From Salpingoeca rosetta (Eukaryota; Protista; Choanoflagellata), in NCBI GenBank assembly GCA_033442325.1, contig JAWQFM010000001.1:2564973-2628972 (forward strand): a stretch of 64,000 bases of DNA, given 5' to 3'. The notes under the pieces are model-generated. The model did not search any database and was not told the DNA's origin. It saw only the letters and a program-made list of their open reading frames with translations. Positions 4,497 to 48,527 of this stretch are shown piece after piece (position 1 is the stretch's first letter; every line of letters starts with the position of its first letter). The translations under genes and the position numbers were made by a program.

Positions 4497-4597
4497 ANNN
4501 NNNNNNNNNNNNNNNNNNNNNNNNNNNNNNNNNNNNNNNNNNNNNNNNNNNNNNNNNNNNNNNNNNNNNNNNNNNNNNNNNNNNNNNNNNNNNNNNN

Positions 4598-21557: not shown

Positions 21558-22113
21558 CTTCGCGGTGGGGATCAGAAACAAACTCCGCCCTTGTTGGTCG
21601 CTGTTTCTTTCAGACCCTTGGCTGTCGGTCGCCCGCGGCCTGCTTCACACGCTTGCGCTCGCTTCAGCAGTCCTGATGCTGAGATGCTGTGTGTTGGCTG
21701 TTGTGGTGGTGCTTGCTTGAATTCGCGGCAGCCGTTGCTTTGAAGATTTGGCGGCAGAGGATTTTGGGCGATTGTTGGAAGATACCGATAATAATCTGAG
21801 GCATTCGTTGGTCAGCCCCCTCGCCGCGAAAATTCAATTTTCCAGCAACCAGCACAAACAGCAGACACCACAGACCGCCACAACAGCGCGACTGTCACAA
21901 GCGACCACAGCAAACAAACAAGCAAGCAAGGACGTGTGCACGCGTGGTGCTGTGCTGAAGCATACAGATTGACGTGAGTGTGAGAGAGCGAGAGCGTGCG
22001 TGAATTGAGGGGGAGGCTTAGCTGGCTGATCTCGTTTGAAGGCAACCAAGCATCAACCAACACAGACGACAGCTTCCCATCAGCATCAACCAACTCGCAG
22101 CAAGAAAACGACT
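21558..22113. promoter_or_regulatory. Putative bidirectional KIF15/NDC80 promoter with CHR-like (TTTGAA) and E2F-like sites
   Basis: TTTGAA at 21739-21744 and 22035-22040, TTTGGCGG at 21747-21754, and CCGCGAAAATTCAA at 21824-21837, all between divergent ATGs. Confidence 0.55.
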
Positions 22114-25100
22114 ATGGCATACCGCGGAGCGCTGAGCCGCGTGAGCCTGAGCGAGGACAATGCACGTGCGGGGCGCAAGTCCATGGGTGGCCCCATCAAG
22201 AGGCAATCGCGTGGAGGGCGCAACAGCCTTGCACCCCAGAGCAAGCGCGAGAGCCTCGCCGGTCCCAAGGCCTCCTCTCGCAAGTCCATGGCAGGCCGGC
22301 CATCCACGGGCGGGCGGCCATCGACTGCAGGCCGCTACTCGATGGGTGGGCGCCAGAGCATGGGCGGCGCAAACAGCCGCCGCTCCAGCATGCACCGTCG
22401 ACCAGAGCCCCGCCCTCTGAGCGACAAAGGATACAAGCAGCAGAGCATCAAGGAGCTGATGGAGTTCCTGGTGTACAACCAGTTCCCAAAGGCCATTTCC
22501 GAGCAGCGCCTCAAGGGGCCCTCCACGCGCGAGTTTGTGGAGATTTTCCAGTTTGTGTATGAGCGCTTGGATCCTTGCTTCCCCTGGGCCAAGCTCAAGG
22601 CCGAGGATGAGATTCCAACCTTGCTCAAGGCCATCGGCTACCCGTTCTCCGTCAAGCCCAGCCTCATCATCTCCTGCGGCAGCCCCCACAACTGGCCAAA
22701 GCTTCTCGGCGCCCTTCGCTGGATGATCGAGCTCACAGACGTACGTGCGTGTGGGTGTGTGGGTGTGTGGGTGTGTGGGTGTGTGTGTGTGTGTTTGGAA
22801 GTGAGTGATGTGGAGGAGGACAAAGTGATTGCTTCGTGCGTGTGCGTGTGCGTGTGCGTGTGCGTGTGTGTGCGTGCGTGTGCGTGCATGTGTGGATGTG
22901 CAGAAAGGAGGAGTTCCTTCGTTCTGATTTTGTGCGCAAGTACGTGAGATGACTGCCTTTGGACGTGCTTCTGCTATGATGATACCGCCACGCTCATTGC
23001 ACTTCTGTCGCGTGCACACATTACCAACAGTTCTTGGAGGATCACAAGGACAACATTCTCCGCCTCCTCATCTCCCAAGCGCAGCTGCTGTCTGCTGACC
23101 GTGAGGGCGACTTCTTTGGCACCGCCGACAGCGAGGAAATGCTGGAGACACTGCAGTTTATCCTCGAAACAGCTGAGGTGAGTGTGGGGGGAATGCCACG
23201 TGTACTTCTGGGCACTAAATCAACAATGCACACCCATACACTCACACACGCATTCACACGCATTCACACGCACATGGGCTTGATTGCATTTCCCTCGCTC
23301 TCCACTCACACTCACCACCCCCACCACCCTCACACGGATGGCGTGAGCAGACCTTCCGGCAGCACGGCGAGGACGGGATGCTGCCATCGCTGGAGCCCGA
23401 GGCTGTGGAGGAGAAGCGCATGCAGGTGATTGAGGAGCGAGAGGCCCTCAAGGCAGAGAGCGAGCAGCTGCGCGCACAGCGCGATGAGCTTGAGTCTGCA
23501 AGCAGCAGGCTGCCCAAGCTGCGGCAGAAGAAGGCGGAGGTGGAGAGCGACTGCGAGCAGTTGACGCAGGAGCTTGCAAAGGGGCGGCAGAGCGAGGAAC
23601 GGTACGACAAGCGCATCGCAGAGTTGCAACAGTTTCTGGAAGCGCGCAAGGAGGAGCTCGCAAACGTTCAAGCTCGCAAGAGGAAACTGCAGGTGCGTGC
23701 GCGCGCGCGCGTGTGTGTGTCTGTGTCTGTGTGTGGCGTGTGTTGTGAGGGGATGTCAGGTGTACACGAATGGTCTGAATTGTGTGTGTGTGTGTGTGCG
23801 TGCGCTGTTTGTGTCGTGCGTTATTTCGTTGTGTATTGTATGTGTTGTGTCTCCTCCCAAAGTACCTTCAGATGTCGTGGACGGCCATGCATGCTTCACA
23901 AACGTCTGTCCTTCCCCTCACCGACACACCTTCAACGCCCACCGCCTGTCTTGATGTACGTGTGTGCAGGAGACGTGTGATGCGCAAGACATGCAGCGAG
24001 AGCAGTTTGAGCAAGTGCAGACGGAGCTTGCGCGCCTGAAGACGGATTTGAAGAGCACACGCTTCCAGATTCGCCAGCGCAAGGACGACGTGAAGGCAAA
24101 GCAGGACGCTGTTGCACAGAAGGAGCAGCAACTGATTGAGCTGCTCAACGACTACAACCACCTCGTCTGCGAGCTTGGTGTAAGAGGACAGACACACCTA
24201 CATACATTTGTCTTCTTGCGTGTATCCCGTGCATGTGTGGCTGTGTTGTGCTGCACTGTGCTGCTTGCCGTATTGCCCCCTCGGCCTGAATTGATTGATT
24301 GCACACTTCTCCATCCTCCCAATCATAATTCCCATACCTCATCGTCTGCCCCGTCTGTCATCTCGGTTAACTACCTCGCCCTCCGCTGTGCGTTCAGTTG
24401 ACGTCTGCCAACGCCAACAACCCCGTCAGCCGCGACTGCCGCCTCCGCGTTCAGACTACAGCCGACTCTGTCGACGAAATTCTCTCAGGTGCGTGTGTGT
24501 GTGTATGTATGTTCGCATCGTGAATCTCAGGAGGTGTGCGCGCTTGTCCTCGTTGTTGGTGTCGCATGTCACAATTCTGCTCTCTACCCACGCAAGGAGT
24601 GCTCCCATACTCCCAGCCTCACATTCCATTCTCGGACGTTTTATTCCACAGCGAATGTGAAGCGCGACATTGCGCCCGCCATCCAGGAGTTCCGTGGCCA
24701 GGTGCAGCAAAGCCTGCAGCAGGCCGGGCTGGAGCAGCAGCACGTGGCGCGGCAGTTGGCGGAGGTGCAGCAGCAAATTGATGCGAAGCGGGAGGAAATT
24801 GGCAGCCTCGAACAGCGCATTCAGGCCACCATGAAGCACTGCTCCAACGAGGAAGAGGTGCGGATATGAATGGTGGCGTTGCGCGTGGTGTGTTTGAGTG
24901 ATGATGGTATCAGCCGCGCCAGTTCCCTTGATGGTGTTGGCGATCTCTCTTGCTCGCCCTGCTCACACATACACGCACATATACATCACGCACGTGCACA
25001 CGCTGACTCGCGTACACATCACACTCTCCTACACTACACATGCATTGGTACTGACAATCATGCTCACACGGACACACACACACACACGCACACACGCACA

Positions 25101-25626
25101 CACGCACGCACACACACACACACGCACACACGCACGCACACGCACGCACACGCACGCACACGCACGCACAGCTGCTGAGGGAGGAACGCCAGCGCCACGA
25201 GTCGTCGCTCAAGTCGGAGCAGGGCGAAGCCAGCCGTCTGCGGGAAGAGGTGGACACCCTGCGGCATCAGAGCCAGGTGCAGCTTGAGCACGCCATGCGC
25301 CGATACCAGGAGCTCAAGGAGAGCTGTGCCCGTGAGGAAGAGCGCCTGAACAAGGTCATCTTCGAGGCCCTCACCGCCGTTGTGCACTACAAGGTATGGC
25401 AGCAAGACAGTGATGAAGGTGTTGCGGTGATAGTGTTGTACTGCTGTGGTTTCTGCAGGATGAACTCCATATGCACACGCGTGGAAAGAAGTGTCTGCTC
25501 CCGCTCACTCACCGAGTAATCTACAACTCTGTGTGTGTGTGTGCCTGCCTGCTGTGCAACAACTATCACATCCAGGAATACGTCACCAACGTGCTTGCCC
25601 AGATGCAAGCCCGGTACTGCCAATGA
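22114..25626 (+). CDS. NDC80: Kinetochore protein NDC80/HEC1
   Basis: Basic N-tail with RKSM repeats, then the CH domain EPRPLSDKGYKQQSIKELMEFL...LKAIGYPF...GSPHNWPKLLGALRWMIEL and coiled-coil exons. Last exon EYVTNVLAQMQARYCQ*. Confidence 0.95.
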
Positions 25627-25854
25627 TTGCGCCTCTTTTGGCAATTGATGTAGTCCATGCATGTTGTTGCTGCAGTCGTAGTTGGTGTTCTTCTTCTTCT
25701 TCTTCTTCTTGTTGCTTTGCAAGGGCCCAAGACATTGGTTCTCGCGTGATGATGATGGGTGATGAGTGATGATTGGTTGATGATGGTTTGGTCCCAGAAA
25801 CACGATCCGGTGAGGCTGTTGCTATTCTTCTGTTGATGCTGTGTGTGCTTGCGC

Positions 25855-25955
<101 letters not shown>

Positions 25956-26576
25956 GGAGGGTGGGTCCTCTTTTTTTTGGTTTCACGACACGTTGCTTGT
26001 TTGATCGATTGCATTGCTTGTACAGCACGTTGTTTCCTTTCTGCTGTTGTTTGTTCTGTGTGCACCTGCGCTGTTGTTGGTGGCTGCTTCTCTGCTACTG
26101 TGAGTGGCTTCGCCGTCCTTTTGTTCAACTTGTAATGACGTCCAATACATACAAGCAAGTCACGGTTCAGTAAGCGTTCAAAGTAAGCAAGAAGCAAGAC
26201 GTGGGAGAGACGTCAAGGAAGATAGATAGCAGAAGGAACGAAGGCGTCTTTCCAATAAGTTGGCACGCGGCCAACGTTTGTACACAGCAAAGGGCACATG
26301 GAGTGTGGAGCACTAAGATCAGTGGGATATAATGCGATAAGAGTGGTGGCTTCAAGCCGTTCAGCAGGCACGCAAGCAGGGCAAGAGGACATGACATGCT
26401 CAACGGGCGCAGAGTGCGGTAGGGTGCAAAGTTGACGATGCCTTGGTGTTGTGAGGGAACATTGCATGTACAACATGTGTGGTTATGACAAGGGCATGTA
26501 CAAGGGTGCAGATGCTCCGATGAAATGATAAAGCAGAGGCAGAGGGAGGTAGGGGAGAGAAGGGACGGCAGATCTG

Positions 26577-27727
26577 TCACGCACGCGCGCGTGTCATGCC
26601 AAACATGCTCTGCAGGGTTCGATGAACCGCTAAGCGCTGCCGTCCGTCGACCTTGCGCATGGCACCAAAGCTGAGCTCTGTGTAATGTGATGGGAGGAAG
26701 GAATGTGTGACATGTGGTTTGCAGCATAGAGCATTGAGTATGTGACGAGTCACAGCCCTGCAGCTGAGCAGGGGATCGTCGTACCTGTGTACTTGCGACG
26801 TTAACAAAGCACACGGCTGCGGGGACACACGCACACACACATACACACACACATACACACTCACTCACACACACACTCACTCACACACACACTCACTCAC
26901 ACACACACGCACATACGTGCACACGCATATGTACGTGCACACTCAGATATAGCAACGTCTGACGTACTTCGGCTTTTGGTTTCAAAGTGATAAAACTCGG
27001 GGATGACGGCCTGGCGCTCATCATCCCATGGCATGACCCACAGGAAACCAAACTTGTGCAGCCTCTCGTTTGAGACAACAACGTAGCGGTGATGAAGCCT
27101 GCCTTTCCCAGCTGCCTCCGTGTCAACGACAAGGCGCCAGCAGTGGTCTGTGGTGGATGTGTCGTGGAGCCGAGCGACCATCTTCCACGCCTCATCGCGA
27201 GCGGCTTGCAGCACAGACGCGCGCACGGGGGCTTTGGGACGCCAGCTTTGCAGGTCACCTGTACGGATGTGGATGACATCTGCAAAGCAATCCTTTGGCG
27301 CACCATCCTGCTCGCGTGTCACCGGTACGGAGGGCAGTGGCCTGCGCTTTCGGTTTTCGATGACGCTGGGCTTTGTGGTGGTGAGCATGATGCCGAGCAC
27401 ACGGCCAGTGCGCCGATCCTGCGAAAGCGGCAGGCAGTAGCGATAGCCGTCGCTGCGACGGTGGTCGCGCTTCTCATTTCCCACGGTGTTGTTGTGGAAG
27501 CCATCCCAGACAAACCTTCCAACGGCAGCTACACAGGACAAGCAAATGCAGCGCAACGCAACCCAGTCAAGCCCAACACGCAAACAGTCATAGCACAGGG
27601 CGCAGAGGAAAAGTGAGTTAGGGGCGAGGCGCCAAGGAGCAGGGGGGCAAGGTTCTAAGGTGGTTGAGCAGGAGTGGGCTGAACGCCATGGGTGCACGAC
27701 TGTACCTTGTTGACCAGGCGATGTCAT
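26577..27727 (-). CDS. Spliced protein with tandem PemK/MazF-like domains (~235 aa)
   Basis: Model exons 27727-27706, 27528-26968, 26816-26793 and 26677-26577 total 708 nt in frame, all GT-AG. Domain 1 is GRFVWDGFHNNTVGNEK..GYRYCLPLSQD..VLGIMLTT..GAPKDCFADVIHIRTGD. Domain 2 is EAAGKGRLHHRYVVVSNERLHKFGFLWVMP. The 3' exon structure is uncertain. Confidence 0.65.
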
Positions 27728-27901
27728 GGTGGTCGACGTCGATGTGACAATGACCAAGGGGAGTAGAGCGTACCAAATCAGTGGGAATGGGGAAGATGGG
27801 GTTGGTTGATTGTGTTAGGTCTCACTGCAAGTTGTCTTGCTTGCTGTTACTGTTGTTGCTGCTTGCTGTTGCTGCTTGCTGTTGCTGCTTGCTGCTGGTG
27901 C

Positions 27902-27933
<32 letters not shown>

Positions 27934-28474
27934 TGCTGCTGGTGGTGGTGGTGCTGCTGTTGGTGGTGTTGCTTGTGCATGTCAGACAAACGAGACGTAA
28001 ATAACGTTCACGCTTGCTTTTGGCGGGAACATGCACAAACAAGTGCACACAACATTTGGCGCGAGCATGTCTATGTCATCAAGACAAGGCGGTCGAATCG
28101 TCTGCCCGCTGAGACAAAACTTCCCGAGCTTCGCCACAGTTTTTGGAACACCCAGTTCCCGCACTACTGCCGAACGTAACGTGAGATGTGACTGCTTGCT
28201 TGCTTCTGCGCGCGCGCGTGTGTGTTTGTTTGTGTGTGTGCGTGGTTTATTGGGGAAAACTCGCTGAAATCTTACACTGTTCCCGGCGCTCAAAGGTGTG
28301 TACTTTGTTTGCGTTTCATTTGCTTGCTTGTTCGGGGTCGGTGGGCCTCATCAGTGACATGAATGAGCTCCATTACTTCGTCCCAGCGCAGAGCCACAGC
28401 ACGCGAGACATGACTGCTCCTAACACATACCGCACGCGACAATTCTTTTGCACCCGCAATTGGCAAACCATCCA

Positions 28475-28591
<117 letters not shown>

Positions 28592-28793
28592 CAGTTTGGA
28601 GTGTGTTACAGCAACGTACAGTAATATCAATGATCTTTATCGAGAGAAGAGACAGACAAAACACAATGTACAACGCAGCAGCCATGAAGGCACAAGCACA
28701 CAAGCACAGACACAGATGCACACCTAGGTACAGGGTGGACGGTGAGGGCCACCCATGGCAGAATCGAGGATGTTCAAGGCACACACTGCAGGC

Positions 28794-30845
28794 TTACAGG
28801 AGATCATTTCCTGGCTTGGGCTCCATGCTCTTTGGAACCAGTTTGATGTCATCAATGTCGCCAAACACGGGGTCAAAGTCGCCCTCGCAGAGCGTGCGCA
28901 GGTTGTAGAAGAAGGCGCGCTTCTGCTGAGCAGAGATGAACGGGTTGTTGCCGAGCGCCGTTGCACACAGCTGCGCAAAGTACTTGACGTTGGGTGCCGC
29001 CCCTTCAAACTGCTCCATCTCCTTGCTGAAGTCCGTGTGCTGGCGCATGCGCTCCTCAATCGGCAGCGCCGACAAGTCCATGCCCTATCCGGGTGTGAGT
29101 GTGTATGTGTGAGTGAGTGAGTGAGTGTGTGTGAGTGAGTGAGTGAGTGAGTGAGTGAGTGAGTGTGTGTGTGTGAGTGAGTGAGTGAGTGAGTGTGTGT
29201 GTGTGAGTGAGTGAGTGAGTGAGTGAGTGAGTGAGTGAGTGAGTGAGTGTGTGGGTGTGTGTNNNNNNNNNNNNNNNNNNNNNNNNNNNNNNNNNNNNNN
29301 NNNNNNNNNNNNNNNNNNNNNNNNNNNNNNNNNNNNNNNNNNNNNNNNNNNNNNNNNNNNNNCAGACCCGACTTACGTGTTCGATGGCGCCAATCTCGTT
29401 GTCCAGCGTCTTGGGACCAGGGAACGAGGACACAGCCATGGATTCCCTGTACGCAGTATTGAAACAGGTACAAGAACCAAGCGGTCACGTGAGCGCGAAG
29501 AAGGCTCAGGGCAATGCATGCACAGACGTGTGTGTGTGTGTGTGGGGGGGGGAGACAAACACACGCTTGCAAAACACTTACATCTGCACAGACAACAGAC
29601 AAAGCCCACCTACACACTCACGCACCTGCTATCGTGGTAATCTGAAACAGAGATGACGTTCTCTGATGTCGTTGAACCAAACCATGCTGTGTTGACCAAC
29701 AAGCACATGTGTGTGTGTGTGCGAAGGTGTGTGGGTTCGAAATGGTCCATCTCGTCAACCGTACGAGAGAAAACAAGTGCGAGTCAGGCATGCAGTGAAC
29801 GGACAAGTACACATACACAGACGGGCCCGCGTACACACGCACGCACGCACGTACGCACACACACACACTCACACTCACACACGCACGCACGCACGCACAC
29901 ACGCACACACACACACACGCACTCACACACTCACTCACACACACTCTGATAGCCACACAGGCACGTACATTGTTGGGAAGGCTTGACATTGGCGGACTGG
30001 CTGAGGATGGAGGCGACGGCCGGGGGCAGGCCTTCGTGCTGCTCTACCTTCTCGGACGAGACCTCGACGGAGGGCAGGCTGCGCGCGTTCTGGTCGCCAG
30101 CAGGTGCAGTTGTCGGGGCTGTTTCCTCCTTGTACTTTTCAAGCGCTTCCTTCAGCTCAGGGAACTCATGGGCCAGGTCACGCAAGAAGTGCTCGGGCGC
30201 AACTTCCTTCTCCAACGCAGCCAGCTGCTCCTGGGTGAGTGCCTTGCCAAGGTTGGGGAAGGTGCGTGGGCCGTACCTGAAGGCCGCGCGCACAGCCTCG
30301 CGCGTGGCCGGGTCAGAGATGAAGTCAAAGGATGGCGTGCGGCTCTCCCGCTCCTGTGCTGAGATGTAGCGGCGCCGCTGGTGACGCTTGCCACTTGCTG
30401 CCAGCTGTGTGGTGTCAGTGGCATTGGCCTTCGCGTTTGCCTCGGGGTGCTGGGACTTTCCTTGCTGCGCGTGGGTCGGAGTGGTGGTGGCAGTGTCCGT
30501 GCGTTGCTTTCGCGCTTTGCTCAGCACGCTATCCAGAAATGACGGTGTGGATGCGCTGACCGCAGAAGCAGAAGCAGAAGCAGAAGACGAAGGCGAAGAA
30601 GAAGAAGAAGAAGAAGAAGAAGAAGAAGAAGCGCTTGCCTCAGGTTTTGCAGAGGCAGTTGAGCCGGGTCCATGGCGGCGGCCCTTGTTGCTGCCATCCT
30701 TGTCATCTGCGCGATAGGATGTGTTTGTGGTGTGGAAGGCGCGTGTGCGGGAGGAAGCGAACAGCGCCTTGGTGGTAGTGCCTGCGCAGCTGTCAGCCTG
30801 CACAGCCGCCATCACAGCCGCTCGCCTCATGCTCGCCAGCATCAT
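28794..30845 (-). CDS. MRPS31: Mitochondrial ribosomal protein mS31-like
   Basis: Arg/Ala-rich presequence (MMLASMRRAAVM). LDNEIG and VKYFAQLCATALGNNPFISAQQKRAFF resemble MRPS31 ([29 protein letters not shown]). Four exons with consistent phases. Confidence 0.75.
29263..29362. other. Assembly gap (100 N), inside an MRPS31 intron
   Basis: Run of N. Confidence 1.
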
Positions 30846-30965
30846 CCTGTGTGTTGACTGGGGTTGGTTTGTTGGTGTGCGTGTGCTGGTGAATGTGGAC
30901 GATTTACTGATATCTTGGCAAACATTCCACACCTCTCACCTCGCCAACCAGCCAGTGAGTGGATG

Positions 30966-30996
<31 letters not shown>

Positions 30997-31122
30997 TGGA
31001 TGGTGTGTGTGTGTGTGTGTGTGTGTGTTTGTACTTATGTACTTGTGCGTGTGTGTGTATTTGTGCTTGTGCGTGTGTGTGTGTGTGGATGGTGTGTGTG
31101 TGTGTGTTTGTACTTATGTACT

Positions 31123-31153
<31 letters not shown>

Positions 31154-31353
31154 ACTTGTGTGTGTGTGTTTGTTCTTATGTTGTACTTATGTGCGTGTGT
31201 GTTTGCTGGCGAACTGTTCTCCTGGCTGAATCGTTTCCCGTGCCCTCTCCCTTTCCCTCAACTTGCACCACCCCCACTCACTGTACGCTCTGCCTGGGTC
31301 CGTGTATCTTGGCGGCAGCCCACGCACGCGTGCCTTGCGTCCCACTCGTCATC

Positions 31354-31660
31354 ATGTCCGGTATCGCTGATCCTTCCATCCGAATGGATTCGGAGTACTA
31401 CAAGAAGGCGACGAGCGTGGAGGAGATGAAGGAAACGTCCGCCGTCTTGAAGGCCGCTGCACGTCACATGGGCCAGGCATGCGCTGAGGTTTCCCTCGGC
31501 TACATGAGGTGGGGGTTTTTGGGGGAGGAAGCGGAAGGAGCGATGGGCCATTGTGTGTTTGTTCGCGCGTGTGTGTTCATGTGTGTGCGTGTGTGTTCAT
31601 GTGTGTGTGTGTGTTTGTGTGCTTGTGTGTTTTTCATACACAACGATGCTCTCGCGCTGT

Positions 31661-31697
<37 letters not shown>

Positions 31698-32361
31698 GCA
31701 CACACGCACGCACACACACACACATATTCATTGCCCCCATCTTCTGTCCCACTCGACCGCTTGTAATGTAGGTGCAAGAAGGCCAACAACGGTGACCCCA
31801 CCAAGTGCCTCGAACAGGGCGAGGCTGTGACCAAATGCGGCATTGAATTGTGAGTTTGAAGCCCACAGTCGCACCCATGTTCTTTTATTGGTAGCGCTGG
31901 TGTTGATGTAAATTCTTTCCTAGCGTGGTGTCTTGGGTCTTGCCTTGCATTTGCTATTCATGCACTGGGGCGTCCAAGCTGAAGACTACTCGTGGGTTTG
32001 ATGACGCCAGTTAATCCTCTTCTGCCACCTGCGTCCTCCTTCCTCTTCTCCTCTCTCTCCTTTCATTTGTCTCGCCTGTCAGCTTCAAGGCCCTGCGCAG
32101 CAACTGCGGTGCCGAGCTTGATGCGCAAGCAGAGTGCCTTGAGTCCAACAACCACACATTCTCCAAGTGCCGCAAGACGCAATCTGCACTTGACGAGTGT
32201 GTCTTTGAGAAGATGGTATGTCCTGCATGTAGAGTGCCTTTGTGCTTGTGCTTGTGTTTGTGCTTGTGCGTGTGTGCGTGTGTGCGTGTTTGTGTGCTTG
32301 TGTGGTTACCACGTCCTGTCCCTGCGCTGTATGTCTTCTTTGTGTCTGATCCCCGCGTCAA

Positions 32362-33217: not shown

Positions 33218-33913
33218 TCAAGCATCTCCGGCACCTGCAAACGGAATGGTGGGAACAGCGACATCGCAGGGTCTGGCGTGAGCAATGGGCAGCACGACAA
33301 GCAGCATAGAACCGCGCAAAGCAGCAAGCAACCGCGCAAAGCAGGGATGGGCTGAGGTTGATCACACAACCGCAGCTTACCTTGATCCTGTGCATCACCA
33401 TCATCTTCACCATCACCTTCACCATCACCATCACCATCACCACCATCATCATCATCATCATCACCATCATCGCTGTAGCCGTCAGCATCGTCGTTCCCAT
33501 CACCACCACCATCCTGCGCGCTCAGGTCCATGTGGCTCTCGCGTTCCTCTTGAATCGCATCTGCGGTGGTGGTGGTGGTGGTGGTGGTGGTGGAGGAGGA
33601 GGAGGAGGAGGAGGAGGAGGAGGAGGAGGAGGAGGAGGAGGAGGAGAAGGAGGAGGAGGAGGAGGAGGAGGAGGAGGAGGAGGAGGAGGAGGAGGAGGAG
33701 GAGGNNNNNNNNNNNNNNNNNNNNNNNNNNNNNNNNNNNNNNNNNNNNNNNNNNNNNNNNNNNNNNNNNNNNNNNNNNNNNNNNNNNNNNNNNNNNNNNN
33801 NNNNGAGGAGGAGGAGGAGGAGGTGAAGGGGCGTGAGGGCAAATAAAGGAGGGCACACACACGTATAACAGGGTGATGTCGACGGCGGACAATAAGCAGG
33901 TACAAAGAGCAAT

Positions 33914-48427: not shown

Positions 48428-48527
48428 NNNNNNNNNNNNNNNNNNNNNNNNNNNNNNNNNNNNNNNNNNNNNNNNNNNNNNNNNNNNNNNNNNNNNNNNN
48501 NNNNNNNNNNNNNNNNNNNNNNNNNNN

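Follow-up and report, generated by a model that had tools for sequence, protein, structure and literature searches.

PTSG_00213 of Salpingoeca rosetta, a spliced gene for a putative tandem PemK/MazF-like protein

The window analyzed here is a stretch of 64,000 nucleotides from Salpingoeca rosetta, in which the gene PTSG_00213 lies on the minus strand and reads from an ATG at 27727 (start codon context CCACCATGA) to a TGA stop at 26577–26579. Two stranded RNA-seq runs of 2026 from the same organism (X21 and X22) were mapped on positions 26450–27800, together with a run of 2011. Coverage of this interval is restricted to one strand and contains exactly two joints, both GT..AG on the minus strand. 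The joint 27528/27706, which skips 177 nt, is carried by 13 reads in X21 and 60 in X22, and the joint 26677/26968, which skips 290 nt, by 30 and 48 reads in the two runs and also by one contig of the 2011 run; depth is near zero over intron 1 and low over intron 2. The CDS given by the stranded reads has three exons (22, 561, and 101 coding nt) and a length of 684 nt, encoding 227 aa, and its translation is identical at every residue to the database hypothetical protein PTSG_00213. A preliminary description of this DNA had proposed a GT-AG spliced gene at 26577–27727, and this span is exact, from stop codon to ATG. The junction check by RNA-seq that it called for yielded a spliced transcript with two GT-AG joints but not the third intron, and its model of four exons, 708 nt, and about 235 aa has to be replaced. 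All the peptide strings that it quoted are present in the translation and are contained in a single long ORF (26897–27757). PTSG_00213 is a real gene with three exons and constitutive transcription; its features are listed below.

From the ATG to beyond 27800, minus strand: 5'UTR, with RNA-seq depth continuing to 27800
27706..27727, minus strand: exon 1, coding part, 22 nt, from M1 to the first base of codon 8, supported by junction reads
27529..27705, minus strand: intron 1, 177 nt, GT..AG, phase 1, RNA-seq joint
26968..27528, minus strand: exon 2, 561 nt, residues 8–194, holding the entire N-domain and most of the C-domain; depth 15–130
26678..26967, minus strand: intron 2, 290 nt, GT..AG, phase 1, RNA-seq joint
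26577..26677, minus strand: exon 3, coding part, residues 195–227 and the TGA stop, with the C-terminal helix and the conserved ...MFG tail
26450..26576, continuing below 26450, minus strand: 3'UTR, depth 73–250, first mate on the plus strand only
27167..27523, minus strand: putative N-terminal PemK/MazF-like domain, about residues 10–128, from Atlas, hhalign, profile matches, and BLASTP
26580..27166, minus strand: putative C-terminal PemK/MazF-like domain, residues 129–227, split by intron 2, from Pfam (in a paralog), PDB profile matches, and hhalign
27440..27442, minus strand: codon of R37, aligned to the catalytic Arg29 of Escherichia coli MazF
27380..27382, minus strand: codon of T57 (LTTT motif), aligned to Thr52 of E. 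coli MazF

On the same strand, the 3'UTR and exon 3 (26450–26680) are covered two to four times as deeply as exon 2. This excess could arise from 3' bias, from a stable 3' fragment, or from a second transcript start within intron 2; no further junction was reported there by RNA-seq. At the other end, a long trinucleotide repeat, (GCT/GTT)n, closely precedes the start codon at 27830–27960 and probably lies inside the 5'UTR or the promoter, because reads still cover 27738–27800.

The gene has the appearance of its surroundings. The GC content of its CDS is 0.59 and the GC3 0.67, against 0.60 and 0.73 for the exon of NDC80, which adjoins it at 22036–22944 (Ndc80_HEC, E = 1.9e-37), as the preliminary description had it. 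For the MRPS31 proposed as a neighbor, a search with PF15433 returned no match anywhere, control genomes included. Intron 2, which interrupts the C-domain ahead of its last helix, carries imperfect (CA/GT)n repeats at about 26800–26920, a microsatellite typical of the S. rosetta genome, and it is to this intron that the earlier remark on GT repeats in the introns applies. The window also has four runs of exactly 100 N, which are scaffold gaps (4498–4597, 29263–29362, 33705–33804, and 48428–48527), one of them within the gene upstream of PTSG_00213. A type II toxin–antitoxin operon would have an adjacent, co-transcribed antitoxin gene of the MazE/PemI type; the transcript of PTSG_00213 is monocistronic and spliced, and the eight flanking ORFs scanned (22021–31827) gave no antitoxin-type Pfam match, in agreement with the earlier remark that no antitoxin is visible.

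PTSG_00213 belongs to a small family. A six-frame search with it over the whole 55.4-Mb genome of S. rosetta led to two more loci, one on contig 16 (45% identity, E = 4e-40) and one on contig 30 (33%, E = 4e-14); a weak fourth locus (L004, E = 0.13, one stop) was attributed to chance. The family is composed of three paralogs, PTSG_00213, PTSG_12402 (contig 16, L002), and PTSG_10565 (contig 30, L003). All three have a phase-1 intron at nearly the same position, shortly ahead of the first conserved strand, and a second one in the identical alignment column, ahead of the conserved C-terminal tail L..G....(K/Q)(R/S)M(F/L)G. Both introns are common to all three paralogs and are therefore older than the duplications. 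The deposited model of PTSG_10565 (229 aa) lacks the N-terminal strands conserved in the family, treats intron 2 as coding, and is probably mis-spliced, because it departs from the conserved family structure. An alternative model of 218 aa predicted from the sequence (L003:1331–2244, exons 1331–1352, 1481–2023, and 2153–2244) retains both family introns and the conserved tail. The first exon of PTSG_12402 encodes an 82-aa Cys- and Ser/Arg-rich N-terminal extension that is absent from the other two paralogs and may represent either a targeting sequence or an artefact of annotation.

These observations bear on the question of contamination. That PTSG_00213 is bacterial or phage DNA, or an intact toxin–antitoxin module misassembled into the genome, finds no support at the locus itself; the only thing that speaks for it is a separate bacterial-looking MazF fragment elsewhere in the assembly. 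The spliced reads exclude it for this locus, and the host-like GC and GC3 together with the adjacent NDC80 argue in the same direction, as do the host microsatellite within a spliceosomal intron confirmed by RNA-seq and the two intron-sharing paralogs on other contigs, so that the probability left to contamination is vanishingly small and the preliminary description was right to dismiss it. The fragment elsewhere (contig 22 of assembly G000, 986872–987006, plus strand; L005:1501–1635) is a canonical bacterial-type MazF N-terminus that matches PF02452, the Pfam family of MazF/PemK, with 34.9 bits, above the cut-off, over profile positions 1–44, and has an in-frame TGA. Its GC content is 42% against 55% in the flank, and it is bordered by an 888-nt run of N and, on the opposite side, by a host (CA)n repeat. 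Either a recent insertion of bacterial DNA, of which this would be a relic, or an assembly chimera could account for it.

The preliminary description had read the protein as two tandem MazF/PemK-like domains and had suggested that each half be compared with PF02452. This comparison came out negative: the gathering score of PF02452 is 23.1 bits, no member of the family reaches it, and neither PTSG_00213 nor its halves match the profile at E ≤ 10. PTSG_00213 has no Pfam match at all. The sole Pfam match of PTSG_12402 is nevertheless PF02452, in the C-half (E = 0.0017, 19 bits, below 23.1; profile positions 6–62), and a six-frame search with PF02452 gives 18 bits at the locus of this paralog. Predicted structures point to the same family. 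The ESM Atlas model of PTSG_00213 (pTM 0.75) has as its best structural neighbor a 238-aa cluster (TM 0.73/0.70 over 197 residues, positions 6–222), all members of which bear PF02452 and come mostly from tailed phages. The same cluster is matched by the Atlas model of PTSG_12402 (TM 0.56/0.67, residues 79–288). On these predicted models, the SH3-like barrel and C-terminal helix of the CcdB/MazF-type fold are present; being ESMFold predictions, the models are not independent of the language-model features considered below. AlphaFold2 models are too poor to judge the fold, whether from the single sequence (pLDDT 45.6) or from the three-paralog alignment (pLDDT 42.0), and for the single-sequence model, Foldseek against the PDB and an Atlas shape search returned noise only.

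For the C-half, the evidence comes from profiles. The profile of the C-half has only four matches in the PDB with E below 10, all of them MazF chains (6l29, 5hjz, 6kyt, and 6kys; E = 0.12–0.78), aligned from the first strand on. When it was compared by hhalign with a PemK profile (Neff 4.7) made from 35 diverse sequences of bacteria and viruses, P was 2.8e-4 and the score 27.0, a value attained by none of 150 shuffles (mean 10.2, sd 2.0). That the C-half is PemK/MazF-like is very likely.

For the N-half, queried as residues 8–130, several methods give the same answer. Its Atlas features score 0.92, with 175 of 256 in common, a kind of score that, according to the warning of the Atlas tool, arises by chance in a few percent of cases, and the top named matches are all PemK/MazF clusters; its part of the Atlas model resembles a 129-aa single-domain PF02452 cluster (TM 0.66/0.63). 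Against the same PemK profile, hhalign gives P = 0.0029, colinear over 95 columns, with a score of 22.3 that none of 150 column shuffles equals (mean 10.3, sd 2.2) and a reversed control at 8.3; a default run gives P = 0.032. In 121 Desulfobacterota genomes, the N-half profile had 44 weak matches, four of which fell inside true PemK genes, on the right strand and in register, in a search space of which PemK genes occupy only about one part in several thousand; the four genes form one 103-aa subfamily and hence amount statistically to roughly one event. Other small bacterial ORFs matched by the half-profiles, outside this group, are not PemK. Pairwise BLASTP of the N-half against one 103-aa PemK, a partner picked after the search, gives E = 6e-6 with 31% identity over 58 aa, and both share the motif (I/L)PS..v..r.QDG.P.DC......HI.T directly after ITTT/LTTT.

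On the strength of these matches, the N-half is also likely to be PemK/MazF-like. Another view would confine the PemK relationship to the C-half and take the N-half as an unrelated lineage-specific domain, leaving neither a tandem nor a pseudo-dimer. It draws on the facts that all HMMER-level PemK/MazF matches, in Pfam and in the PDB, concern the C-half, that the PDB matches of the N-half profile are spurious designed propellers, and that the default hhalign run is just P = 0.032. It is nonetheless very improbable, given that the N-half by itself retrieves PemK/MazF clusters as its top named Atlas matches, has a TM of 0.66 to single-domain PemK models, exceeds all shuffles, and matches true PemK genes in the right register. 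As a side observation, Atlas clusters annotated as DegT/DnrJ/EryC1 aminotransferases (300–536 aa) have a part that matches the PemK-like N-half (TM 0.73 by query), and in one of them, 40% of members bear PF02452, which suggests that PemK-like domains are fused to aminotransferases in Pseudomonadota.

Taken individually, the sequence statistics are all weak (P between 3e-4 and 3e-2), and the two halves have no detectable similarity to each other (hhalign, P = 0.11). A fast-evolving orphan family with a coincidental resemblance to PemK/MazF would be consistent with the lack of any match above curated thresholds, with AlphaFold models of low confidence, and with the chance-score warning of the Atlas tool, but it would have to explain why independent methods, applied to three different proteins and their parts, converge on this one family and on no other, and is quite improbable. 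The earlier claim of tandem MazF/PemK-like domains stands in the sense that several weak and concordant lines extend to both halves, while no half passes the Pfam threshold; two PemK/MazF-like domains in tandem are, in our judgment, probable in PTSG_00213.

Relatives beyond S. rosetta are hard to find. HMMER phmmer over about 1.84 billion representative proteins retrieved only PTSG_00213, one paralog, and two bacterial repeat proteins, which are spurious and have the word DGYRY in common with it, and a word-indexed profile search of 5.8 billion proteins retrieved only the three S. rosetta proteins. No relative was found by tblastn against phage records or by pattern scans of viral contigs and metagenome contigs, the broad PemK alignment being too diverse to serve the viral scan. 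The family profile gave noise only over 301 Acidobacteriota genomes, NCBIfam and PADLOC had no match for PTSG_00213, and PHROGs gave just two weak matches, to families of unknown function. As judged by sequence, the family is private to S. rosetta among the data sets searched.

The closest known proteins are the type II toxin endoribonucleases of PF02452, the bacterial MazF/PemK proteins such as Kid, ChpBK, and MazF-mt9. Each half of PTSG_00213 has a fitting length of about 100–120 aa and is colinear with their domain over its full extent, first strand and C-terminal helix included, and the N-half retains equivalents of Glu24, Arg29, and Thr52. In contrast to them, PTSG_00213 carries two domains in one chain instead of forming a homodimer, its sequence lies below the Pfam threshold, the Arg-Pro motif is Arg-Tyr/Phe in the S. 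rosetta proteins, and the second site is degenerate; moreover, the gene is eukaryotic, spliced, and monocistronic, without an adjoining MazE/PemI-type antitoxin gene. The best direct sequence match of the N-half is the 103-aa Desulfobacterota PemK subfamily (for example, L195:127–435, PF02452 63 bits), which has the ITTT/LTTT, followed by the QDG motif and the C-terminal helix. These are, however, single-domain bacterial proteins, the match spans only the second half of the domain, and a role as donor is not supported. The 238-aa cluster, mostly of tailed phages and compared by predicted shape only, is similar in length and shape over both halves of PTSG_00213, while no similarity could be detected at the level of sequence. 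It is possibly related to phrog_35650 ("MazF-like growth inhibitor," a 224-position profile), which matches nothing in the S. rosetta genome and, in 301 Pseudomonadota genomes, matches single domains only. CcdB, a gyrase poison with the SH3-like barrel fold of the same superfamily, lacks the RNase residues that the N-half retains, and no CcdB sequence or profile signal was seen in PTSG_00213.

The catalytic pair of E. coli MazF consists of Arg29 and Thr52. In alignments that are remote, so that the assignments are provisional, E26, R37, and T57 of the N-half correspond to Glu24, Arg29, and Thr52 of this enzyme, and all three residues are invariant in paralogs that are only 33–45% identical. 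In the C-half, a Gly stands where MazF has Glu24, an invariant Asp (D176) takes the place of Thr52, and PTSG_12402 has Thr instead of the Arg; the catalytic Arg and Thr are found, under the same provisional alignments, in the N-half and not in the C-half. Bacterial MazF acts as a homodimer, the interface of which forms the RNA groove. Because of this homodimeric state, the fused domains would most likely pack, by analogy, as a single-chain pseudo-dimer, which with an intact site in the N-domain and a degenerate one in the C-domain would be asymmetric and would have one active site. The likeliest activity would be that of a ribosome-independent endoribonuclease for single-stranded RNA working through this one site, because the N-domain retains the Glu, Arg, and Thr equivalents and the C-domain has lost them. 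By analogy with MazF, cleavage would proceed by attack of the 2'-OH and leave 2',3'-cyclic phosphate and 5'-OH ends.

In place of an operon-type antitoxin, which is lacking, such an enzyme would have to be controlled through its expression or localisation, through an unlinked inhibitor, or through a narrow substrate specificity. An unopposed MazF-type RNase that is steadily expressed should be harmful to the cell, which speaks for an activity that is low, narrow, or absent: given steady transcription without an adjacent antitoxin, it would be weak, of narrow specificity, confined to a compartment, restrained by an unlinked partner, or lost. The last of these leads to the main rival reading, in which the protein has kept the PemK/CcdB-type fold but is no nuclease, serving instead as a domesticated module that binds RNA or proteins, or poisoning or regulating some other target in the manner of CcdB. 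The CcdB/MazF superfamily includes a non-nuclease, CcdB itself. In addition to this precedent, the loss of the catalytic positions in the C-domain, the extreme divergence of the PTSG_00213 sequence from all bacterial PemK, and the steady expression without a nearby antitoxin are all compatible with a protein of this kind. Set against them is the invariance of E26, R37, and T57 in the N-domain at 33–45% identity, which fits selection on the MazF catalytic set, and the non-nuclease reading is considered rather unlikely.

As to origin, the family would most likely go back to a bacterial or phage PemK gene, possibly already tandem, that was transferred long ago and then gained introns, adopted the host composition, and was duplicated twice. 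An old horizontal acquisition fits the absence of the family from the other eukaryotic data sets searched together with its likeness to a prokaryotic and phage family; the searches found no donor lineage, and the sequences have diverged too far to be placed in a tree. The tandem may be older than the transfer, because the phage cluster has a similar length and predicted shape. On balance, we favor, with moderate confidence, the view that PTSG_00213 is a 227-aa cytosolic-type tandem PemK/MazF-like protein of the CcdB/MazF superfamily, a putative one-site RNase of likely transferred origin.

To our knowledge, MazF/PemK toxins are treated as an invention of prokaryotes and their plasmids and phages. 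A full-text literature search returned no paper linking MazF to choanoflagellates and none mentioning PTSG_00213, and the main text of a preprint that lists 703 candidate transfers in S. rosetta mentions neither this protein nor its family. A wider proposal, which is tentative and at present rather doubtful, is that choanoflagellates carry a domesticated family of single-chain MazF-type endoribonucleases, derived from a phage or bacterial tandem PemK, with one active and one degenerate site and with antitoxin-free control, possibly serving as a cell-autonomous RNA-cleaving switch in stress, antiviral, or antibacterial responses. If this were true, the family would be the first case of a natural MazF-like RNase at work in a eukaryote. 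A spliced, expressed, and triplicated tandem protein of this type, occurring in the unicellular organisms closest to animals, would extend the set of bacterial conflict-system domains that eukaryotes have adopted. It would give an example from nature of a MazF pseudo-dimer that is fused and asymmetric, would be one of the rare occurrences of this toxin fold of bacteria in an organism closely related to animals, and would raise the question of how such a nuclease stays harmless without an antitoxin, a question that is directly testable given that S. rosetta is genetically tractable.
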